From the sequence record NC_071039.1: 64,000 bases of DNA; one strand, written 5' to 3'. The translations under genes were made by a program, and so were the position numbers. The notes below the pieces were generated by a model that had not been told where the DNA came from, searched no databases, and worked only from the letters and a program-made list of their open reading frames with translations. Position 1 is the first letter of the stretch, and each line of letters begins with the position of its first letter. This document shows, in pieces, positions 4,954-10,630 of this stretch.

Positions 4954-5061
4954 GAACTATATCTGCATAATGTAGGTTACATTTGCATGTATAGGATTAT
5001 CTTTCATATAATATATGCTTATTAACTATACGACATGTATTGAATTACTTTATAGTATTGT

Positions 5062-5208
5062 ATGATTCGTAAAAATATAGTTCTAATATCACATAACACG
5101 TCAAAAATAATATTAGAAAAAAGAACAAGTAAAGTATTACGTGTTTCTATGTTTAAATCGATTGGAAAATACTACTACCATTATTATACGGCGTGTGGAA
5201 ATATATAA
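5062..5208 (+). CDS. Microprotein array, short type, 48 aa
   Basis: MIRKNIVLISHNTS...; TAATG overlap with next. Confidence 0.6.
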   Translation: MIRKNIVLISHNTSKIILEKRTSKVLRVSMFKSIGKYYYHYYTACGNI

Positions 5209-5348
5209 TGCAAGATCATCATTTCACTACACTGTTGTATATGTCTAATCGTGCAGATAGAATAAAGATTTTTCGACAGCCTTCCTGTCTTATTGTATAT
5301 ATTAAGTCAGGTATGTTATATATTAATAAACAATTCTTAAAATGTTAG
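5208..5348 (+). CDS. Microprotein array, short type, 46 aa
   Basis: MQDHHFTTLLYMSNRA... Confidence 0.55.
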   Translation: MQDHHFTTLLYMSNRADRIKIFRQPSCLIVYIKSGMLYINKQFLKC

Positions 5349-5515
5349 AATATATAGATACTCTCAAATATAATTACATTTTAACTGTATGCAGCGGTGT
5401 AGAGTCTATATCATTTGAATCATTTACTAGATCAGTGATATCAGTTTCCATAATATATAATAATATTACTATCTTTCCGTGCCAAACTACACGAACTATA
5501 CTGTATGGTGTATAA
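5342..5515 (+). CDS. Microprotein array, short type, 57 aa
   Basis: MLEYIDTLKYNYILTVCS... Confidence 0.5.
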   Translation: MLEYIDTLKYNYILTVCSGVESISFESFTRSVISVSIIYNNITIFPCQTTRTILYGV

Positions 5516-5639
5516 TCTTATTTTTATTTCTTTTAATGTTTCTTTAATTATTTTTTCTATTTTTAATAAAACATTCGAAGTTTATATTTATGGAAAAATG
5601 TTATTGGTAATTTATTATACAGGACTGCATATATGTTAG
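5505..5639 (+). CDS. Microprotein array, short type, 44 aa
   Basis: MVYNLIFISFNVS... Confidence 0.55.
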   Translation: MVYNLIFISFNVSLIIFSIFNKTFEVYIYGKMLLVIYYTGLHIC

Positions 5640-5785
5640 ATATATTGCTACGGTTCCAACGCAGAGTGGATACAATTAAGGTGGAGTTAATATGGCGTCA
5701 CTTGCATTTTTATGAAAAAGCCGGCGAGGAGTTAGAGTTATTTCATATTATATTTCTGCCGCCCGATCACCGAAGTATTAATTAA
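5633..5785 (+). CDS. Microprotein array, short type, 50 aa
   Basis: MLDILLRFQRR... Confidence 0.55.
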   Translation: MLDILLRFQRRVDTIKVELIWRHLHFYEKAGEELELFHIIFLPPDHRSIN

Positions 5786-5919
5786 CAAAAACAAGTTGTA
5801 TTTTTCGGCATAAAAATTTATGAATAAAGATACAAACAAAGAATCACCTATTATTAAAGAATTATATTTTATATTAAGATTGTAAGTAAAATAAAATACT
5901 TTTAGAATCTAAAACTAAA

Positions 5920-6069
5920 ATGATCGATTGGGTATTTAAATTGTCTGCTAGTTGCTACGAAATAGACGGACAACACAGTGAGTCAATAAGAATATATAAT
6001 TCATATTGTCTTTTAGGAACTATACAATGTTATTGTGCTCAGTTAAAAATAAATTTATATAAATTTTAA
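5920..6069 (+). CDS. Microprotein array, short type, 49 aa
   Basis: MIDWVFKLSASCY... Confidence 0.55.
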   Translation: MIDWVFKLSASCYEIDGQHSESIRIYNSYCLLGTIQCYCAQLKINLYKF

Positions 6070-6105
6070 TATTGTGGGAAGAATTCTTTTAAATAGGCAT
6101 ACTAT

Positions 6106-6249
6106 ATGAATGATCTATTACACTACCAACTCACATTATGTTCCATATCTTTGCAGAAAGCTCTTTTTAAGTCAGGCAATGTGTATTACATTCTAATTGA
6201 ACGTAACGACAGCGGTAGGTATTCCCGAGATGTAAAAATACTTAAATGA
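6106..6249 (+). CDS. Microprotein array, short type, 47 aa
   Basis: MNDLLHYQLTLCS... Confidence 0.5.
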   Translation: MNDLLHYQLTLCSISLQKALFKSGNVYYILIERNDSGRYSRDVKILK

Positions 6250-6250
6250 T

Positions 6251-6421
6251 ATGCGTATATTTGTAATATCACAAAATTGTATGACTATCAGACTTTTTTA
6301 TCATACATATTTCATTAAAGATGTAAATTATGATTCAATTTGTGTATTATATAAAACGAATAGTAGAATTGTAATACATCCGAGTTTTACAGTAGATGAA
6401 TATATTCGATCTGTCTTATAA
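6251..6421 (+). CDS. Microprotein array, short type, 56 aa
   Basis: MRIFVISQNCM... Confidence 0.6.
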   Translation: MRIFVISQNCMTIRLFYHTYFIKDVNYDSICVLYKTNSRIVIHPSFTVDEYIRSVL

Positions 6422-6584
6422 TTCTTCATTTATTTTGATGAAATCGAATAGATTATACATTAGTAACTATAATTATTCTGTAGGGGCTACATATGTATTA
6501 CCTGCAATAACAAAATATATACATCAAACATTCTATGTAAACGCTGCAATATATAGATTTTTAGATACAGGTATACTAGTATGA
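6396..6584 (+). CDS. Microprotein array member, 62 aa
   Basis: MNIFDLSYNSS; ATGA overlap with next. Confidence 0.7.
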   Translation: MNIFDLSYNSSFILMKSNRLYISNYNYSVGATYVLPAITKYIHQTFYVNAAIYRFLDTGILV

Positions 6585-6769
6585 AATTCAATATATTTAA
6601 ATTGCAAAGAAGATGTCACATTATAAATTGTCATTTTTATGACATTCTTAGATTTTCAAAACCTACATATTTTCGAGATGCTGATAGAATAACTATATTT
6701 TCATTAATAGGTACTAATAGTATCAGAATTTACGAGGATATGTATAAAGGATATGCACAAACCATATGA
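6581..6769 (+). CDS. Microprotein array member, 62 aa
   Basis: MKFNIFKLQRRC; ATGA overlaps. Confidence 0.7.
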   Translation: MKFNIFKLQRRCHIINCHFYDILRFSKPTYFRDADRITIFSLIGTNSIRIYEDMYKGYAQTI

Positions 6770-7050
6770 TTGAAATATTAATATTTTCGAGTGTTAGTGA
6801 TTATATTAGTATAAGACATGATATGGCACGGCTATATAATCTTAATGGTATTAGTGAATTAATATTTGTATCAAAACCATACAAATATATTATATTAACT
6901 AATTTAAAAAATCGTATAGGTATATTCTGTATTTCAAATATAATAAGTGAAAGGGTGATGGGAGATATTACTAGTAACGAATGTTGGGCTTATCCTTGGC
7001 CTCCAGATACTGGCATAGATGTATATATTGATTTCCTGTATAAAAATTGA
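6766..7050 (+). CDS. Microprotein array member, long type, 94 aa
   Basis: MIEILIFSS...IGIFCIS. Confidence 0.7.
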   Translation: MIEILIFSSVSDYISIRHDMARLYNLNGISELIFVSKPYKYIILTNLKNRIGIFCISNIISERVMGDITSNECWAYPWPPDTGIDVYIDFLYKN

Positions 7051-7149
7051 TGAGCTTTCTACTAAACGCACAATATAACCATAGACAAATAAGTGCATTA
7101 TGCTAATATATACATGCTTACTAAACAGTTACTTGTTAAGTAAGTTAAA

Positions 7150-7455
7150 AAGTCTGTAACAGTGATGTTACAGGATACACAGGCAAATACGGTTGGAAGA
7201 TGCTGTGTAAAGAACAAATATCCAGCTCATTCCTAGGCATTATAGCCTACACATTATATTTGAATGGGCATAAAAACTTCCAAAGAACCTTCGAAATTTT
7301 CTCGTAGGATAGTGTATTAGAAGGAATGCACTATCAGGAAGCTGTAGGTGATGGTTGCTATCCCAGACAGTCCTTTCTAAAATACTTTAATATGATATAA
7401 AGTTCTATGCAACCGTATACATGCTGTAAGATATTAGATTACACCATGTATTAAA
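7150..7455 (+). ncRNA. Candidate structured ncRNA or long structured 5' leader (RNA-A)
   Basis: ORF-free; nested helices 7187-94/7411-18, 7193-99/7277-83, 7225-32/7262-69, 7308-18/7325-35, hairpin 7154-73; putative extended -10 tgcTAATAT upstream. Confidence 0.55.
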
Positions 7456-7558
7456 CGTAAAAGCAAAACCTTCAGTTAGTAATCTCGCAGTGAAGGGGGT
7501 AGGTGAGTGCTACCCAAACTCAACAAACAACTAATGGTCTAGAAAAGGTATAGTATAC

Positions 7559-7966
7559 ATGCAACATACTCACATTCGTTTCTACAACGAAGAAACTCAA
7601 CAGATCGATAACCGCCGTGGCGCTACTGTTGCCTGGGAAACCGCCGGCAACAAGATCCGTATTTCCGTAGCAGCATGTTCGGAAATGGATAACTTCAACC
7701 GCAAGACCGGACGTGAACATGCTGCTAGCCGTCTCGAAAGTGGCGACTACATCGAGTTTAACGGCACCGAACTTCTTAATGCACAGATGTCTTCTGTAAG
7801 TCATGTGCAGTCTGAAGGTCTCGTTCGTGCTATGTGCTTCTTGCTAGCACAAGGCAAAGGCGATCTATATTACCCGGCAAGCGAAGGTCAGCTTCGCAGC
7901 GAAGCCGAGTGCAATAGCTACAACGCTCTCGAGTACCTGAAACACCAGATGGGCATTCATCAGTAA
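7559..7966 (+). CDS. Hypothetical protein, 135 aa, with a common phage AxCSxxDNFxRKxGRxxAxxRL motif
   Basis: Host-like codon usage; motif recalled from small phage proteins, family not assigned. Confidence 0.85.
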   Translation: MQHTHIRFYNEETQQIDNRRGATVAWETAGNKIRISVAACSEMDNFNRKTGREHAASRLESGDYIEFNGTELLNAQMSSVSHVQSEGLVRAMCFLLAQGKGDLYYPASEGQLRSEAECNSYNALEYLKHQMGIHQ

Positions 7967-7979
7967 GTATTCGGCCATT

Positions 7980-8022
7980 CGGAATTGCGATTTAGGTTTT
8001 GGAATTCTAAATCGCAATTCCG
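7980..8022. terminator. Perfect 16-bp inverted repeat (terminator or cruciform)
   Basis: CGGAATTGCGATTTAG-11nt-CTAAATCGCAATTCCG just after the CDS. Confidence 0.65.
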
Positions 8023-8207
8023 GTTTCCAAATTCAATTTTAGGCACAAACTCGGGTCCGCATTTGCATTTTGCATTTACATTTTGTGTTCTGAGTGTATA
8101 TGCAAAATGCAATCGCGCATGTTGTCGATGCATTGGCTAATCTTTTATTTTTGATAGTTTAGAAAAGATTAAGAACAGAAACTATCTGTAAATTAATAAA
8201 AATAACA

Positions 8208-8236
8208 TTTACATTACATACACATATGCATATACT
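8208..8236 (+). promoter_or_regulatory. sigma70-type promoter
   Basis: TTTACA-17-TATACT. Confidence 0.6.
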
Positions 8237-8242
8237 ATATAC

Positions 8243-8520
8243 AAGTTATGCGCTGTTGCATACGTAAATACCTCCTATGTTGTTTAGATATGTCGATTCT
8301 GGTATAACCAGATAGACCTAAGGATGATGCTAGTGATTCCTTAGTATTGTATATTCTAGCTGAGTATAAAGAGTAAGGGGCTTTATACAAATAACAATTC
8401 CTTAGGCAAGATATACCGCTCCGTTGTGCTGACGAGCATAATTTGCCCAGATACAGAGCACGTGACTGTTCTGAGGAGCATTTATATCAGAAAGGCAGAC
8501 TTATGTTTGCCTTTCTTTTT
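8243..8520 (+). ncRNA. Candidate sRNA of about 280 nt (RNA-B)
   Basis: Promoter upstream, no ORF, hairpins 8318-24/8338-44, 8364-71/8381-88, 8418-22/8475-79; ends in terminator agaaaggcagac-ttat-gtttgcctttct-tttt. Confidence 0.6.
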
Positions 8521-8535
8521 GAGCAAATATTCTCT

Positions 8536-8664
8536 TATTCATTTCCTTATTCATTTCCTTATTCATCTCTATTTCATTTGTCACTTCCTTATTCACTTCC
8601 TTATTCATCTCTATTTCATTTGTCACTTCCTTATTCACTTCCTTATTCATCTCTATTTCATTTG
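8536..8664. repeat. Pyrimidine-rich tandem repeat, 12-bp subunits within a 42-bp higher-order unit
   Basis: Unit ccttattcatctctatttcatttgtcacttccttattcactt at 8557, 8599, and partial at 8641. Confidence 0.9.
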
Positions 8665-8669
8665 TTATT

Positions 8670-8787
8670 GCAAATAAGACTAATTCTTATTTGTGTTTGT
8701 AATTTCATTTGTTATTGCAAATAAGAATTAGTCTTATTTGCATTTGCAACGAAAAAGAATATGCAAATAATAACTAATCTTATTTGC
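8670..8787. promoter_or_regulatory. Three tandem 25-bp palindromic operator-like boxes (GCAAATAAGA-N5-TCTTATTTGC)
   Basis: Copies at 8670, 8717 (perfect arms) and 8763; motif recurs at many intergenic loci. Confidence 0.75.
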
Positions 8788-8959
8788 ATTTGCACTGCCT
8801 AGTATATGGATTGGTAGCATACTTGGAAATGGATAGTAGATAAGTAGTTGATTTGTTTATAAATTATAATTCTACACCATACTGATTGACCTTGCTATAT
8901 ATAGCTCGCGCGCGTATGCAAGATGGTAAAAAATAATTTAAAAATATTTTAAAAAATGC

Positions 8960-8988
8960 TTGACTTTCCATTACTACGACCTTAAAGT
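8960..8988 (+). promoter_or_regulatory. Strong sigma70 promoter with UP-like AT tract
   Basis: TTGACT-17-TAAAGT preceded by an A/T-tract. Confidence 0.7.
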
Positions 8989-9054
8989 GCGAACTGTAGA
9001 CGCAGTGTGTAGAACGCTACATAGTAAGCAACGCAGAAAGTAAACAAAAAATGC

Positions 9055-9083
9055 TTGACGCAATGCAAACTAGGCTCTACACT
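9055..9083 (+). promoter_or_regulatory. Second tandem sigma70 promoter
   Basis: TTGACG-17-TACACT. Confidence 0.7.
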
Positions 9084-9166
9084 GTATACAAGCTTAAGGG
9101 GTAAGTGCCCCGAAAGTGTAGTAAGTAAACAACATAATCCTTCCATCAGCTACAGAGGTATACAAC

Positions 9167-9871
9167 ATGTCCGTACATATCACTCGTCAGCGTACCGACA
9201 AACAGCACGTCCTGGCACTGGCAATCAACGGCGTGGTCATCGGCCAGACGATGGCTACTTACACCACCCCGAGCAAGCGCACCTGGTCGGCGACCGCCGA
9301 AGTCGAGCTGGCAGACGGCACCGTCGTTCAGTTCGAGAAGAAAGAAGTGTTCAGCGCGATCCGCATCACCCGCGAAATCGAGCAGGCGCTCGACGGCAAG
9401 GAACTGGCGGCCAAGTACACCCCGGAACCGAAAGTTCCCGGGCAGAAGGGTCCGAAACCGCTCACCGACGAAAGCCGGCTCAGCAACGCGATCGCGATCG
9501 TCAAGGCGGCCATCACCCACACCGGCTTCGACGAAGCTACCCTGGTGTTCGACGGGGTCGACAAGGCCACCTTCGAGCAGAACAGCACTTCCGTCGGCAA
9601 CAAGCTGCGTCGCCTGGGCTTCGTCTTCGAACTCGGCGCCGGCAAGGCGAACAGCGGCAAGGGCTTCCTGATCAACCGCAAAGCGCAGGCCGAGGCAGAA
9701 GCTGCCGAACGCAAGGCCAAGCGCGATGCCGAGAAGAAGGAACGCGAAGAAAAAGCGGCGGCTGCCAAGCGCGAAGCTGACGAACGTAAGGCCAAGCGCG
9801 AAGCCGAACGCGCCGAAAAGGTCGCTGAAAAGAACGCAGCGATCGCCGGTGCGGCACAGGAAAGCAAGTAA
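9167..9871 (+). CDS. GC-rich paralog family member 1 (VFSAIRI domain plus Lys/Glu/Ala coiled tail), 234 aa
   Basis: AGAGG RBS, tandem promoters, terminator; domain shared with 27937 and 33964. Confidence 0.9.
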   Translation: MSVHITRQRTDKQHVLALAINGVVIGQTMATYTTPSKRTWSATAEVELADGTVVQFEKKEVFSAIRITREIEQALDGKELAAKYTPEPKVPGQKGPKPLTDESRLSNAIAIVKAAITHTGFDEATLVFDGVDKATFEQNSTSVGNKLRRLGFVFELGAGKANSGKGFLINRKAQAEAEAAERKAKRDAEKKEREEKAAAAKREADERKAKREAERAEKVAEKNAAIAGAAQESK

Positions 9872-9886
9872 TTGCCCAACTGCGCC

Positions 9887-9918
9887 GAAAGGGGAGCAAT
9901 TTGCTCCCCTTTCTTCAT
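9887..9918 (+). terminator. Intrinsic terminator
   Basis: gaaaggggagcaa-t-ttgctcccctttc followed by T-rich tail. Confidence 0.8.
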
Positions 9919-9941
9919 GACCATATAATCTATATACTACT

Positions 9942-10166
9942 GTGTCTTTAACTATATTTTCTATATCAGCTAGTTTGTATGCAATAACTTGGTATTCTAT
10001 GCCAGCGACACAATGCTGTTATATAGACATAATAACACGCGACGCTGATATTTTTATAACCTATCCATTTTATAATAACATACTTGTATCTAAAATTATT
10101 TCTAATACAATACCTGTAGGAAGTTATGAACACTATATTAGAGATATGTCGTGGAATAAGAAATGA
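9942..10166 (+). CDS. Satellite microprotein-family member, 74 aa
   Basis: GTG start, SLTIFSISAS resembles the xIFxxS motif. Confidence 0.5.
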   Translation: MSLTIFSISASLYAITWYSMPATQCCYIDIITRDADIFITYPFYNNILVSKIISNTIPVGSYEHYIRDMSWNKK

Positions 10167-10300
10167 TCATATAACAGTCAATAATTTTACATATGACTAC
10201 TATCTAGAGGTAAACACACCTGCGTTTTCTTTAATGATAATTATTCCGACAGTTCCTATATTAGACAATACTTGCATTACTTTTATAAAAAAGTATTAAT

Positions 10301-10468
10301 ATGAATATATTCTTTATATCAAACGGTCTATCTAATATAATATATCACAAAGATAATTTGATACAACATAATATACATATGATAGATATTGAGATTAATA
10401 ATTCTGCTGTTATTTGGCTTACATATTCTTTCAATATTGCTAAGGTATCATTTAAATATATTATCTAA
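10301..10468 (+). CDS. Satellite microprotein-family member, 55 aa (not in ORF track)
   Basis: MNIFFISNGLSNII... Confidence 0.6.
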   Translation: MNIFFISNGLSNIIYHKDNLIQHNIHMIDIEINNSAVIWLTYSFNIAKVSFKYII

Positions 10469-10630
10469 TTCATTTTCTTATTGTATGAATTGCAATTGCA
10501 AATTACTCTTATTTGTAATTGCATATAAACAATCAGTTGCTATTAAAAGTATTTGCTGTTAATATATTATATAACAGTGCAATTGATATTTTAAAATACA
10601 GTGTGCAATACATCTTACATGTATTAAAAT

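Follow-up and report, generated by a model that had tools for sequence, protein, structure and literature searches.

Genomic Organization of the gp35 Locus

The window analyzed here is a stretch of 64,000 nucleotides (nt) from record NC_071039.1, which matches bases 1–64000 of vB_PaeM_PA5oct (MK797984.1), a jumbo phage of Pseudomonas aeruginosa, with 100% identity at identical coordinates and is placed in the 39-kb direct terminal repeat of PA5oct. The element under study, region 7090–7558, is housed in the gap between gp33 (6766–7050) and gp35 (7559–7966), and its part from 7114 onward is, on balance, best explained as a long 5′ untranslated leader of the gp35 mRNA with a cis-acting role in stability and translation. 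The sole GenBank entry in this gap is gp34 (EST35_0034), an open reading frame (ORF) of 35 amino acids (aa) at 7200–7307, and a "putative lncRNA" (long noncoding RNA), ncRNA001, is annotated downstream of gp35 at 8263–8498. Four noncoding RNAs (ncRNAs) have been listed for PA5oct, none of them at 7090–7558; the phage requires the host RNA polymerase, and stranded RNA sequencing (RNA-seq) has placed the onset of high early transcription "between gp34 and gp105," with nearly all of it on the Watson strand (PMC7318152). Transcription of the region is already known, but it has been booked as a 35-aa gene. The G+C content of the leader is 36% vs. 25–27% in the adjacent small genes. An original prediction, made from the sequence of the window, had described the region as ORF-free and as a closed, multi-branched RNA structure in front of the 7559 gene. 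The first description is nearly accurate for the + strand, where all ORFs are ≤35 aa; the one at 7200–7307 is annotated as gp34. The features of the locus are as follows.

7082–7109, + strand: sigma-70-like promoter (−35 TAGACA, 16-nt spacer, extended −10 TGcTAATAT; 9/12 matches)
7114–7558, + strand: probable 5′ untranslated leader of the gp35 mRNA, ∼430–445 nt, with the 5′ end somewhere in 7114–7130
7200–7307, + strand: gp34 ORF (EST35_0034), 35 aa, GenBank annotation, coding status doubtful
7559–7966, + strand: gp35 (EST35_0035), 135 aa, with a third-position substitution pattern
7980–8022, + strand: perfect 16-bp hairpin just past the gp35 stop codon (fold z-score about −4); RNA depth falls ∼tenfold in the bin 7944–8127
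8058–8117, + strand: second long hairpin with 23-nt arms, between gp35 and ncRNA001

Transcription of the Leader and gp35

Logan contigs of four RNA runs were placed on 5000–10500, and their depth was summed in 184-nt bins. In the runs X1 and X3 of an infection study, RNA depth jumped ∼60–200-fold at ∼7130, just downstream of the sigma-70-like promoter, whose hexamers are invariant in all strains and whose predicted start lies at ∼7114–7117. In X1, the depth was 4.2e3 at 6840–7023, 2.6e5 at 7024–7207, 8.8e5 at 7208–7391, and 7.0e5 at 7392–7575, with X3 behaving alike. Over gp35, the depth of X1 was 7.0e5 and 6.6e5 and then dropped ∼tenfold to 6.2e4 (7944–8127); in the deep runs, it recovered over ncRNA001 and was almost nil past 8496. 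The ratio of leader to coding depth was ∼1.2 to 1 in two deep runs. Low-depth read-through contigs terminated at 7130–7133, and no + strand terminator was predicted between the promoter and gp35. In the unrelated low-depth run X9, the only phage contigs covered 7130–7575 and 8296–8468, and the sole phage contig of the likewise unrelated, low-depth run X7 (7151–7772) bridged the leader into gp35. Since the depth on the flanks was zero in X9 and X7, these contigs represent RNA and not a carry-over of phage DNA.

The jump in depth after the promoter, the level depth through gp35, and the drop at the post-stop hairpins therefore identify the region as the 5′ leader of the gp35 mRNA. The attributes of a 5′ untranslated region (UTR) were all observed, i.e., contiguous and similar depth, a bridging contig, a promoter upstream, and no + strand terminator in between, together with transcription of the gene's own strand in the published stranded data. 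The depth fits a single + strand transcript of ∼0.9 kb, comprising the leader and gp35 and mostly ending at the two post-stop hairpins, of which the hairpin at 7980–8022 is likely the 3′ end, a terminator, or a processing site of the transcript. The abundant RNA seen over the leader in the RNA-seq contigs bears out the transcript anticipated in the original prediction; its reading of the region as a leader is likewise upheld by the very high transcription, continuous with the 7559 gene, and by the purifying selection described below.

Conservation of the Leader, gp35, and gp34 Within the Genus

Sequence variation was assessed in the genus Wroclawvirus using ten GenBank strains, a set that was enlarged with Logan and ENA to 17 distinct sequences. 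Among the ten GenBank strains, the nucleotide diversity (pi) of the leader was 0.0098, compared to 0.0265 at the third codon positions of gp35, 0.0307 at the third codon positions of the upstream ORFs, and 0.025 in the upstream small genes overall. In the 17 sequences, 25 of the 445 positions of the leader were variable vs. 21 of 135 third positions in gp35 (odds ratio 0.32, p = 4.5e-4). This sequence comparison shows that the leader is under purifying selection within the genus.

In the GenBank records of Deifobo, Cassandra, Paride, and Ettore, gp35 is missing, and a 94-aa ORF on the minus strand (7520–7804) is annotated in its place. In the + frame (7559–7963), 21 of the 24 variable sites among the 17 distinct strains fall at third codon positions, and the protein is 99–100% conserved. 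By this substitution pattern, gp35 on the + strand, and not the minus-strand ORF, is the real protein-coding gene.

The region might alternatively code for one or more very small proteins, such as gp34, with the hairpins being incidental. The GenBank annotation was guided by RNA-seq (PMC7318152), the gp34 ORF is open in all ten GenBank strains, and the region upstream is dense in ORFs of 44–62 aa. However, a GGAAG run touches the ATG of gp34 with zero spacing, so that a properly spaced Shine-Dalgarno (SD) sequence is lacking, and no homologue was found in Pfam or PHROGs. The seven variable sites of gp34 are distributed 2/1/4 over the codon positions, and four of the seven are non-synonymous; the synonymous sites 7241, 7259, and 7304, together with the non-synonymous site 7254, fall outside the helices conserved among the strains. 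The ORF also accounts for only 108 of the ∼445 conserved bases. Coding by this region is hence considered improbable.

Predicted Secondary Structure of the Leader

The fold z-score was −3.76 for 7090–7558 and −3.07 for 7114–7558, and the region folded better than all 100 dinucleotide shuffles (0/100 as good), as the original prediction required of a structured RNA. In 150-nt windows, z ranged from −2.3 to −2.9 over 7100–7450; in the genes upstream, most values lay between −1.5 and +1.7, except in a run at 6600–6849 that went down to −1.9 to −2.4. Pair probabilities of the local hairpins were 0.7–0.99. The leader is thus modeled as seven or eight local hairpins that form independently, one after the other, and not as a closed multi-branched domain. 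The predicted elements are given below in 5′ to 3′ order.

7116–7145, + strand: HP0, interrupted hairpin of 12 bp, at or close to the 5′ end; probability 0.86–0.95
7153–7174, + strand: HP1, 9-bp hairpin with a GUGA (GNRA) tetraloop; probability 0.94–0.98
7225–7269, + strand: HP2, 8-bp outer and 5-bp inner helix; probability 0.8 and 0.96
7308–7335, + strand: HP3, 11-bp hairpin with loop AGAAGG; probability 0.96; invariant in 17 strains
7337–7377, + strand: HP4, stepped hairpin (7337–40/7374–77, 7342–45/7367–70, 7350–54/7358–62); helix probabilities from outer to inner 0.53, 0.97–0.99, and 0.96–0.98; invariant
7417–7451, + strand: HP5, 7-bp and 5-bp hairpin with a C.C mismatch (7424/7444); probability 0.7–0.96
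7469–7496, + strand: HP6, hairpin; probability 0.99
7497–7515, + strand: HP7, 6-bp G+C-rich hairpin with loop GUGAGUG; probability 0.99; invariant
7516–7558, + strand: A/C-rich tract with the SD sequence AAGGU (7545–7549), mostly unpaired; invariant in all strains

The mean unpaired probability was 0.77–0.79 for 7516–7542 and ∼0.5 for the SD sequence and the spacer. With the SD sequence and the AUG ∼50–65% unpaired, most of the ribosome-binding region is accessible in the default fold. A weak 5-bp anti-SD pairing (7287–7291/7545–7549) is present in the consensus fold and is unpopulated in the ensemble. The leader also carries an exact 10-nt direct repeat, GTATACATGC, at 7415–7424 and 7553–7562; ∼2% of shuffled leaders have one as long. 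The first copy consists of the 5′ arm of HP5 and the two preceding bases, and the second spans the start codon of gp35. As the 5′ side of HP5 copies the start-codon region, masking of the AUG by the 3′ arm of HP5 is conceivable, but the ensemble contains only a negligible share of pairs between the AUG and 7445–7451. There were no inverted repeats of ≥14 nt inside the leader, the long ones being located downstream of gp35, and a self-similarity search revealed no paralogue of the leader within the window. By eye, GGA (Rsm-type) motifs occur in the leader about as often as its composition predicts, and it contains no exact CA motif of the AAnAAnAA (Hfq/Crc) type.

Variable sites were found at 4 of 156 stem positions vs. 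21 of 289 unpaired positions (p = 0.05; 0.087 when the loop replacement in PAC2 is counted as one event). Among the four stem changes, C7126U in Paride and A7474G in Cassandra convert pairs of HP0 and HP6 into the wobble pairs U-G and G-U, respectively. U7155G in Callisto weakens HP1 without abolishing it (−7.5 vs. −10.3 kcal/mol), and T7439A belongs to the replacement of the HP5 tip, which is swapped in PAC2 and in contig L021 with retention of the hairpin. The three variable sites of HP2 (7241, 7254, and 7259) all lie in loops, and the loop of HP1 is GCGA in L026, so that the GNRA type is retained. In L023, L027, and L028, C7444G turns the C.C mismatch of HP5 into a pair, giving a 13-bp stem (−16.7 kcal/mol). 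This placement of substitutions fits hairpins that are under constraint.

The original prediction had proposed a set of complementary strings, all of which were found in the region, two of them shifted by one base:

7187–7194/7411–7418, + strand: proposed closing helix atacggtt/aaccgtat; pair probability <0.5
7193–7199/7277–7283, + strand: proposed domain helix ttggaag/cttccaa; pair probability <0.5
7284–7288/7402–7406, + strand: proposed domain helix agaac/gttct; pair probability <0.5
7225–7232/7262–7269, + strand: listed helix gctcattc/gaatgggc, located by string check
7234–7238/7245–7249, + strand: listed helix taggc/gccta, located by string check
7308–7318/7325–7335, + strand: listed 11-bp helix, located by string check

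The two flanking hairpins that it had described are real and correspond to 7153–7174 and 7417–7451, both with robust pair probabilities, as are the two further hairpins before the start codon (7469–7496 and 7497–7515). The closed multi-branched fold was not recovered: its three long-range helices remained below a pair probability of 0.5 and were missing from both the minimum free energy and the centroid structures. G7415A, present in PAC2 and contig L021, disrupts the closing helix (C-G to C.A), and this helix cannot form fully together with the ttggaag helix because bases 7193–7194 are common to both. The earlier anatomy therefore holds for the local hairpins and fails for the closing helices.

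Relatives of the Leader and of gp35

No match was obtained with Rfam 15 at the gathering score in the whole window, nothing inside 7090–7558 at E ≤ 10, and nothing anywhere in the window at E ≤ 0.5. The Rfam families covered include riboswitches, self-cleaving ribozymes, group I/II introns, GOLLD, ROOL, HEARO, 6S, tmRNA, and tRNA, and ARAGORN detected no tRNA or tmRNA. A blastn search with the leader against 50,697 phage records retrieved only 11 Wroclawvirus records with ≥97.4% identity. IMG/VR contained no relative, and a metagenome scan yielded one identical strain and two remote family members, but no more.

A novel ncRNA, ribozyme, or riboswitch-like leader had been put forward in the original prediction. 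The strongest version of this idea is a riboswitch or self-cleaving ribozyme whose closed multi-branched domain controls gp35 by ligand binding or cleavage. A long, structured, and conserved leader ahead of a gene is what would be expected of it, and the copy of the start-codon region in the HP5 arm (p about 0.02), whose partner arm could mask the AUG, as well as the weak anti-SD pairing of the consensus fold, point in the same direction. However, no Rfam match was seen at any threshold, the closing helices are disfavored and one of them is disrupted in two strains, compensatory change is absent from all 121 consensus pairs, and the sequence is confined to one genus. The ribosome-binding site is largely open, the masking pairing is negligible, and no terminator or sequestering platform is predicted. 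The RNA contigs run continuously, with no joints or preferred ends, although contigs are a poor test of cleavage. Control by a ligand or by cleavage is thus hardly credible.

An exhaustive HMMER search with gp35 retrieved 71 relatives, and a word-index search found one near-identical protein. The N-terminal domain of gp35 (∼80 residues) is a widespread phage domain of unassigned role. The AlphaFold (AF2) model of gp35 was confident only with the alignment, having a pLDDT (predicted local distance difference test) of 92 with it vs. 52 without it. Searches of Pfam, PHROGs, PDB sequences, Foldseek (PDB, Swiss-Prot, BFVD), and VIA-align for a role of gp35 led only to uncharacterized phage proteins, and the fold searches gave no significant match, the rows resembling a double-stranded-RNA-binding domain (dsRBD) having Z of 3–3.7, i.e., under the noise level stated for the tool. 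For the N-terminal three-strand-plus-helix unit, nothing beyond sub-threshold rows of dsRBD and uS5-like folds was returned.

Three of the 71 relatives, encoded on metagenomic contigs with 42–45% identity, were close enough to share the layout of the locus. In L011, L012, and L014, the gp35 homologue (42–43% identity) is preceded by 740–935 nt almost without called genes (L012 has one call of 35 aa); the fourth contig, L015, is too short to show the upstream stretch. As the gp35 homologue is followed by conserved noncoding sequence and by a gene homologous to that of the 234-aa structural protein, the locus layout is shared. The upstream regions of the distant contigs showed no similarity to the PA5oct leader, either by blastn or by Smith-Waterman alignment against shuffles, and hence no deeper covariation set could be built. 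The 450 nt nearest the gene in two relatives are about as structured as the leader (z −3.8 and −3.3). A more remote family member is tightly packed against its neighbor, and the long upstream space is therefore confined to the close subfamily.

Modules resembling YrlA (RF02553) were observed upstream of the homologue at 737–838 in L011, 3485–3586 in L012, and 769–836 and 1137–1240 in L014, with scores of 45.9, 44.8, and 36.3 bits (E 1e-7 to 5e-5), under the Rfam gathering score of 69, and a weaker copy was seen at 1270–1373 in L011. These tRNA-like modules occupy the upstream space of the relatives and not that of PA5oct, where the Rfam scans of the region and of the window detected none. A short, G+C-rich hairpin whose loop contains GGU was seen in four lineages; its end lies 32–44 nt before the AUG of the gp35-family gene, and a G-poor tract follows it:

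Window 7497–7515: GGU-loop hairpin
L011 1920–1940: GGU-loop hairpin
L014 1937–1957: GGU-loop hairpin
L015 213–231: GGU-loop hairpin

The stems differ, and the hairpin was noted post hoc; on such a reading of the sequences, it may be common to all four lineages. Downstream of the homologue, a noncoding stretch at 2397–2879 in L011 and 2407–2900 in L014 is ∼61% identical, which is above the upstream regions, and this stretch may correspond to the hairpins and ncRNA001 of PA5oct. Fifteen "compensatory" pairs proposed by RNAalifold for L011 and L015 were discarded as over-fitting on a 60%-identical pair.

Proposed Function of the Leader

The leader belongs to no described RNA family and would function most like the extended, structured 5′ UTR of a strongly expressed phage gene. 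In the explanation favored here, with some reserve, 7114–7558 would act in cis. Its 5′-proximal hairpins and densely stacked stems would, by analogy, shield the message from 5′-end-dependent and endonucleolytic decay, and the open A/C-rich tract would serve as a landing site for the ribosome. Protection and landing site together would let a transcript made by the host RNA polymerase accumulate and be translated throughout infection, and the structured 5′ fragment may outlast the coding part.

The leader of Escherichia coli ompA is a 5′ UTR stabilizer with a 5′-proximal stem-loop on an abundant, long-lived message. Similar to it, the PA5oct leader combines a possible hairpin at or near the 5′ end with an open ribosome-binding region on a very abundant message; however, it is three to four times longer, has seven or eight hairpins, and shows no sequence relationship. 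The leader of phage T4 gene 32 mRNA is a model of autogenous control by the encoded nucleic-acid-binding protein. It is likewise a long structured leader on an abundant, stable phage message, but no pseudoknot or unstructured operator was identified in the PA5oct leader.

Several points weigh against the proposed 5′ UTR. The Logan contigs are strandless and their depth is a crude measure; the strand comes from stranded data in the literature. The 5′ end may lie anywhere in 7114–7130, with contigs starting at 7130 and 7151 vs. the predicted start at ∼7114–7117. This bears on the likeness to ompA: HP0, which begins at 7116, is present only in an RNA that starts at ∼7114–7116, and a start at 7130 would leave no HP0, yet the contigs begin there. 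The stabilizer role is drawn from analogy, and the structure is supported by thermodynamics and by the placement of substitutions. The search for covariation among homologues, which the original prediction had called for, gave no compensatory change: RNAalifold with 11 sequences found none at the 121 consensus pairs (covariation term +0.84), and no double compensatory change occurred in the 17 strains, a weak test because the strains are 96–99% identical. Folding of the opposite strand is no worse (z −4.23), and the G-U pairs, taken earlier as a sign of RNA, therefore do not identify the strand. Finally, gp34 would compete with an untranslated leader as a small coding sequence, doubtful as it is with no positive coding evidence found.

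The equal folding of the reverse strand and the want of covariation would also suit a functionless spacer or an element acting at the DNA level, made up of chance palindromes, operator or other-strand terminator sites, or remnants of decayed small genes. HP1 indeed resembles a terminator on the minus strand, and the terminal repeat has several further long noncoding gaps. Such an origin is nevertheless quite improbable, as the diversity of the leader is about one third of the synonymous level, the RNA is very abundant, the G+C content exceeds that of the small neighbors, and early transcription is almost exclusively from the + strand (PMC7318152).

A further point against the 5′ UTR comes from the low-depth runs X9 and X13, in which the whole leader was assembled (word shares 1.00 and 0.94, respectively) and the coding part was not. 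The X9 contigs stop at 7575 with nothing over gp35, and the X7 contig contains the leader and only half of gp35. This pattern hints that the structured 5′ part outlasts the remainder, but a separate leader RNA fits equally. The leader could be, or could yield by processing or decay, a stable ncRNA working in trans, possibly as a partner of gp35 or as a decoy to which a host RNA-binding protein or RNase would bind. Its conservation like that of coding sequence, the Y-RNA-like modules in the equivalent upstream space of the relatives, and the neighboring ncRNA001, an accepted abundant phage ncRNA (PMC7318152), agree with such a role. It is all the same unlikely, as leader and coding depth are nearly equal in the two deep runs, neither a terminator nor a long RNase III-type duplex lies between the leader and gp35, holes in Logan contigs carry no proof, and no trans target is known. 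A more specific form, in which an abundant and long-lived regulatory RNA is co-transcribed with gp35, outlasts the coding part, and acts in trans for example by titrating a host RNA-binding protein or RNase or as the hairpin-rich ligand of gp35, is a long shot. On that reading, the leader, ncRNA001, and the Y-RNA-like modules of related phages would together make up an "RNA island" within the terminal repeats of these jumbo phages.

Neighboring Elements

The leader resembles ncRNA001 and ncRNA002, which are annotated as free-standing ncRNAs (Lood et al., 2020; PMC7318152), in lying in the same terminal repeat on the same strand, in its very high level throughout infection (PMC7318152), and in having no database relatives outside the genus. 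It differs from ncRNA001 in being annotated as a 35-aa coding sequence (CDS) and in being contiguous with a real gene, whereas ncRNA001 seems to have its own promoter-like site (TTTACA, 17 nt, TATACT; 8208–8236) and terminator. By reading of the sequence, the latter appears to be a canonical intrinsic terminator at ∼8489–8522, with a hairpin and a T-run. ncRNA001 is the most conserved stretch nearby (pi 0.005), and its RNA depth equals that of the leader.

The CDS of an "extensin-like protein" at 8503–8724 shows hardly any RNA depth and overlies a 42-nt tandem array (8539–8665) of three copies, the copy number of which varies from strain to strain. Three ∼30-nt palindromic arms follow at 8662–8788, with fold z-scores of −9 to −11. 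The stretch 8503–8788 thus resembles a DNA element, either a repeat or an origin-like one, rather than a gene.

The third-position G+C content of gp35 is 0.51 vs. 0.16–0.24 in adjacent genes, and that of gp38 is 0.77. G+C-rich islands at 7559–7966 and 9167–9871 in the A+T-rich genome coincide with very highly expressed genes, and the G+C-rich third positions of gp35 and gp38 may reflect codon adaptation to the G+C-rich host.

Implications for PA5oct and Related Jumbo Phages

PA5oct is a model jumbo phage and a candidate for phage therapy. By contig depth, few phage RNAs in the examined stretch are as abundant as the gp35 transcript, which is on par with ncRNA001, and the public record labels 430–445 selectively conserved noncoding bases as a 35-aa gene. 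The present analysis opens no new RNA class, and it flags a possible abundant phage RNA beside ncRNA001. Correction of the annotation yields a clear case, open to testing, of the means by which a jumbo phage may keep a single early gene expressed at a high level throughout.

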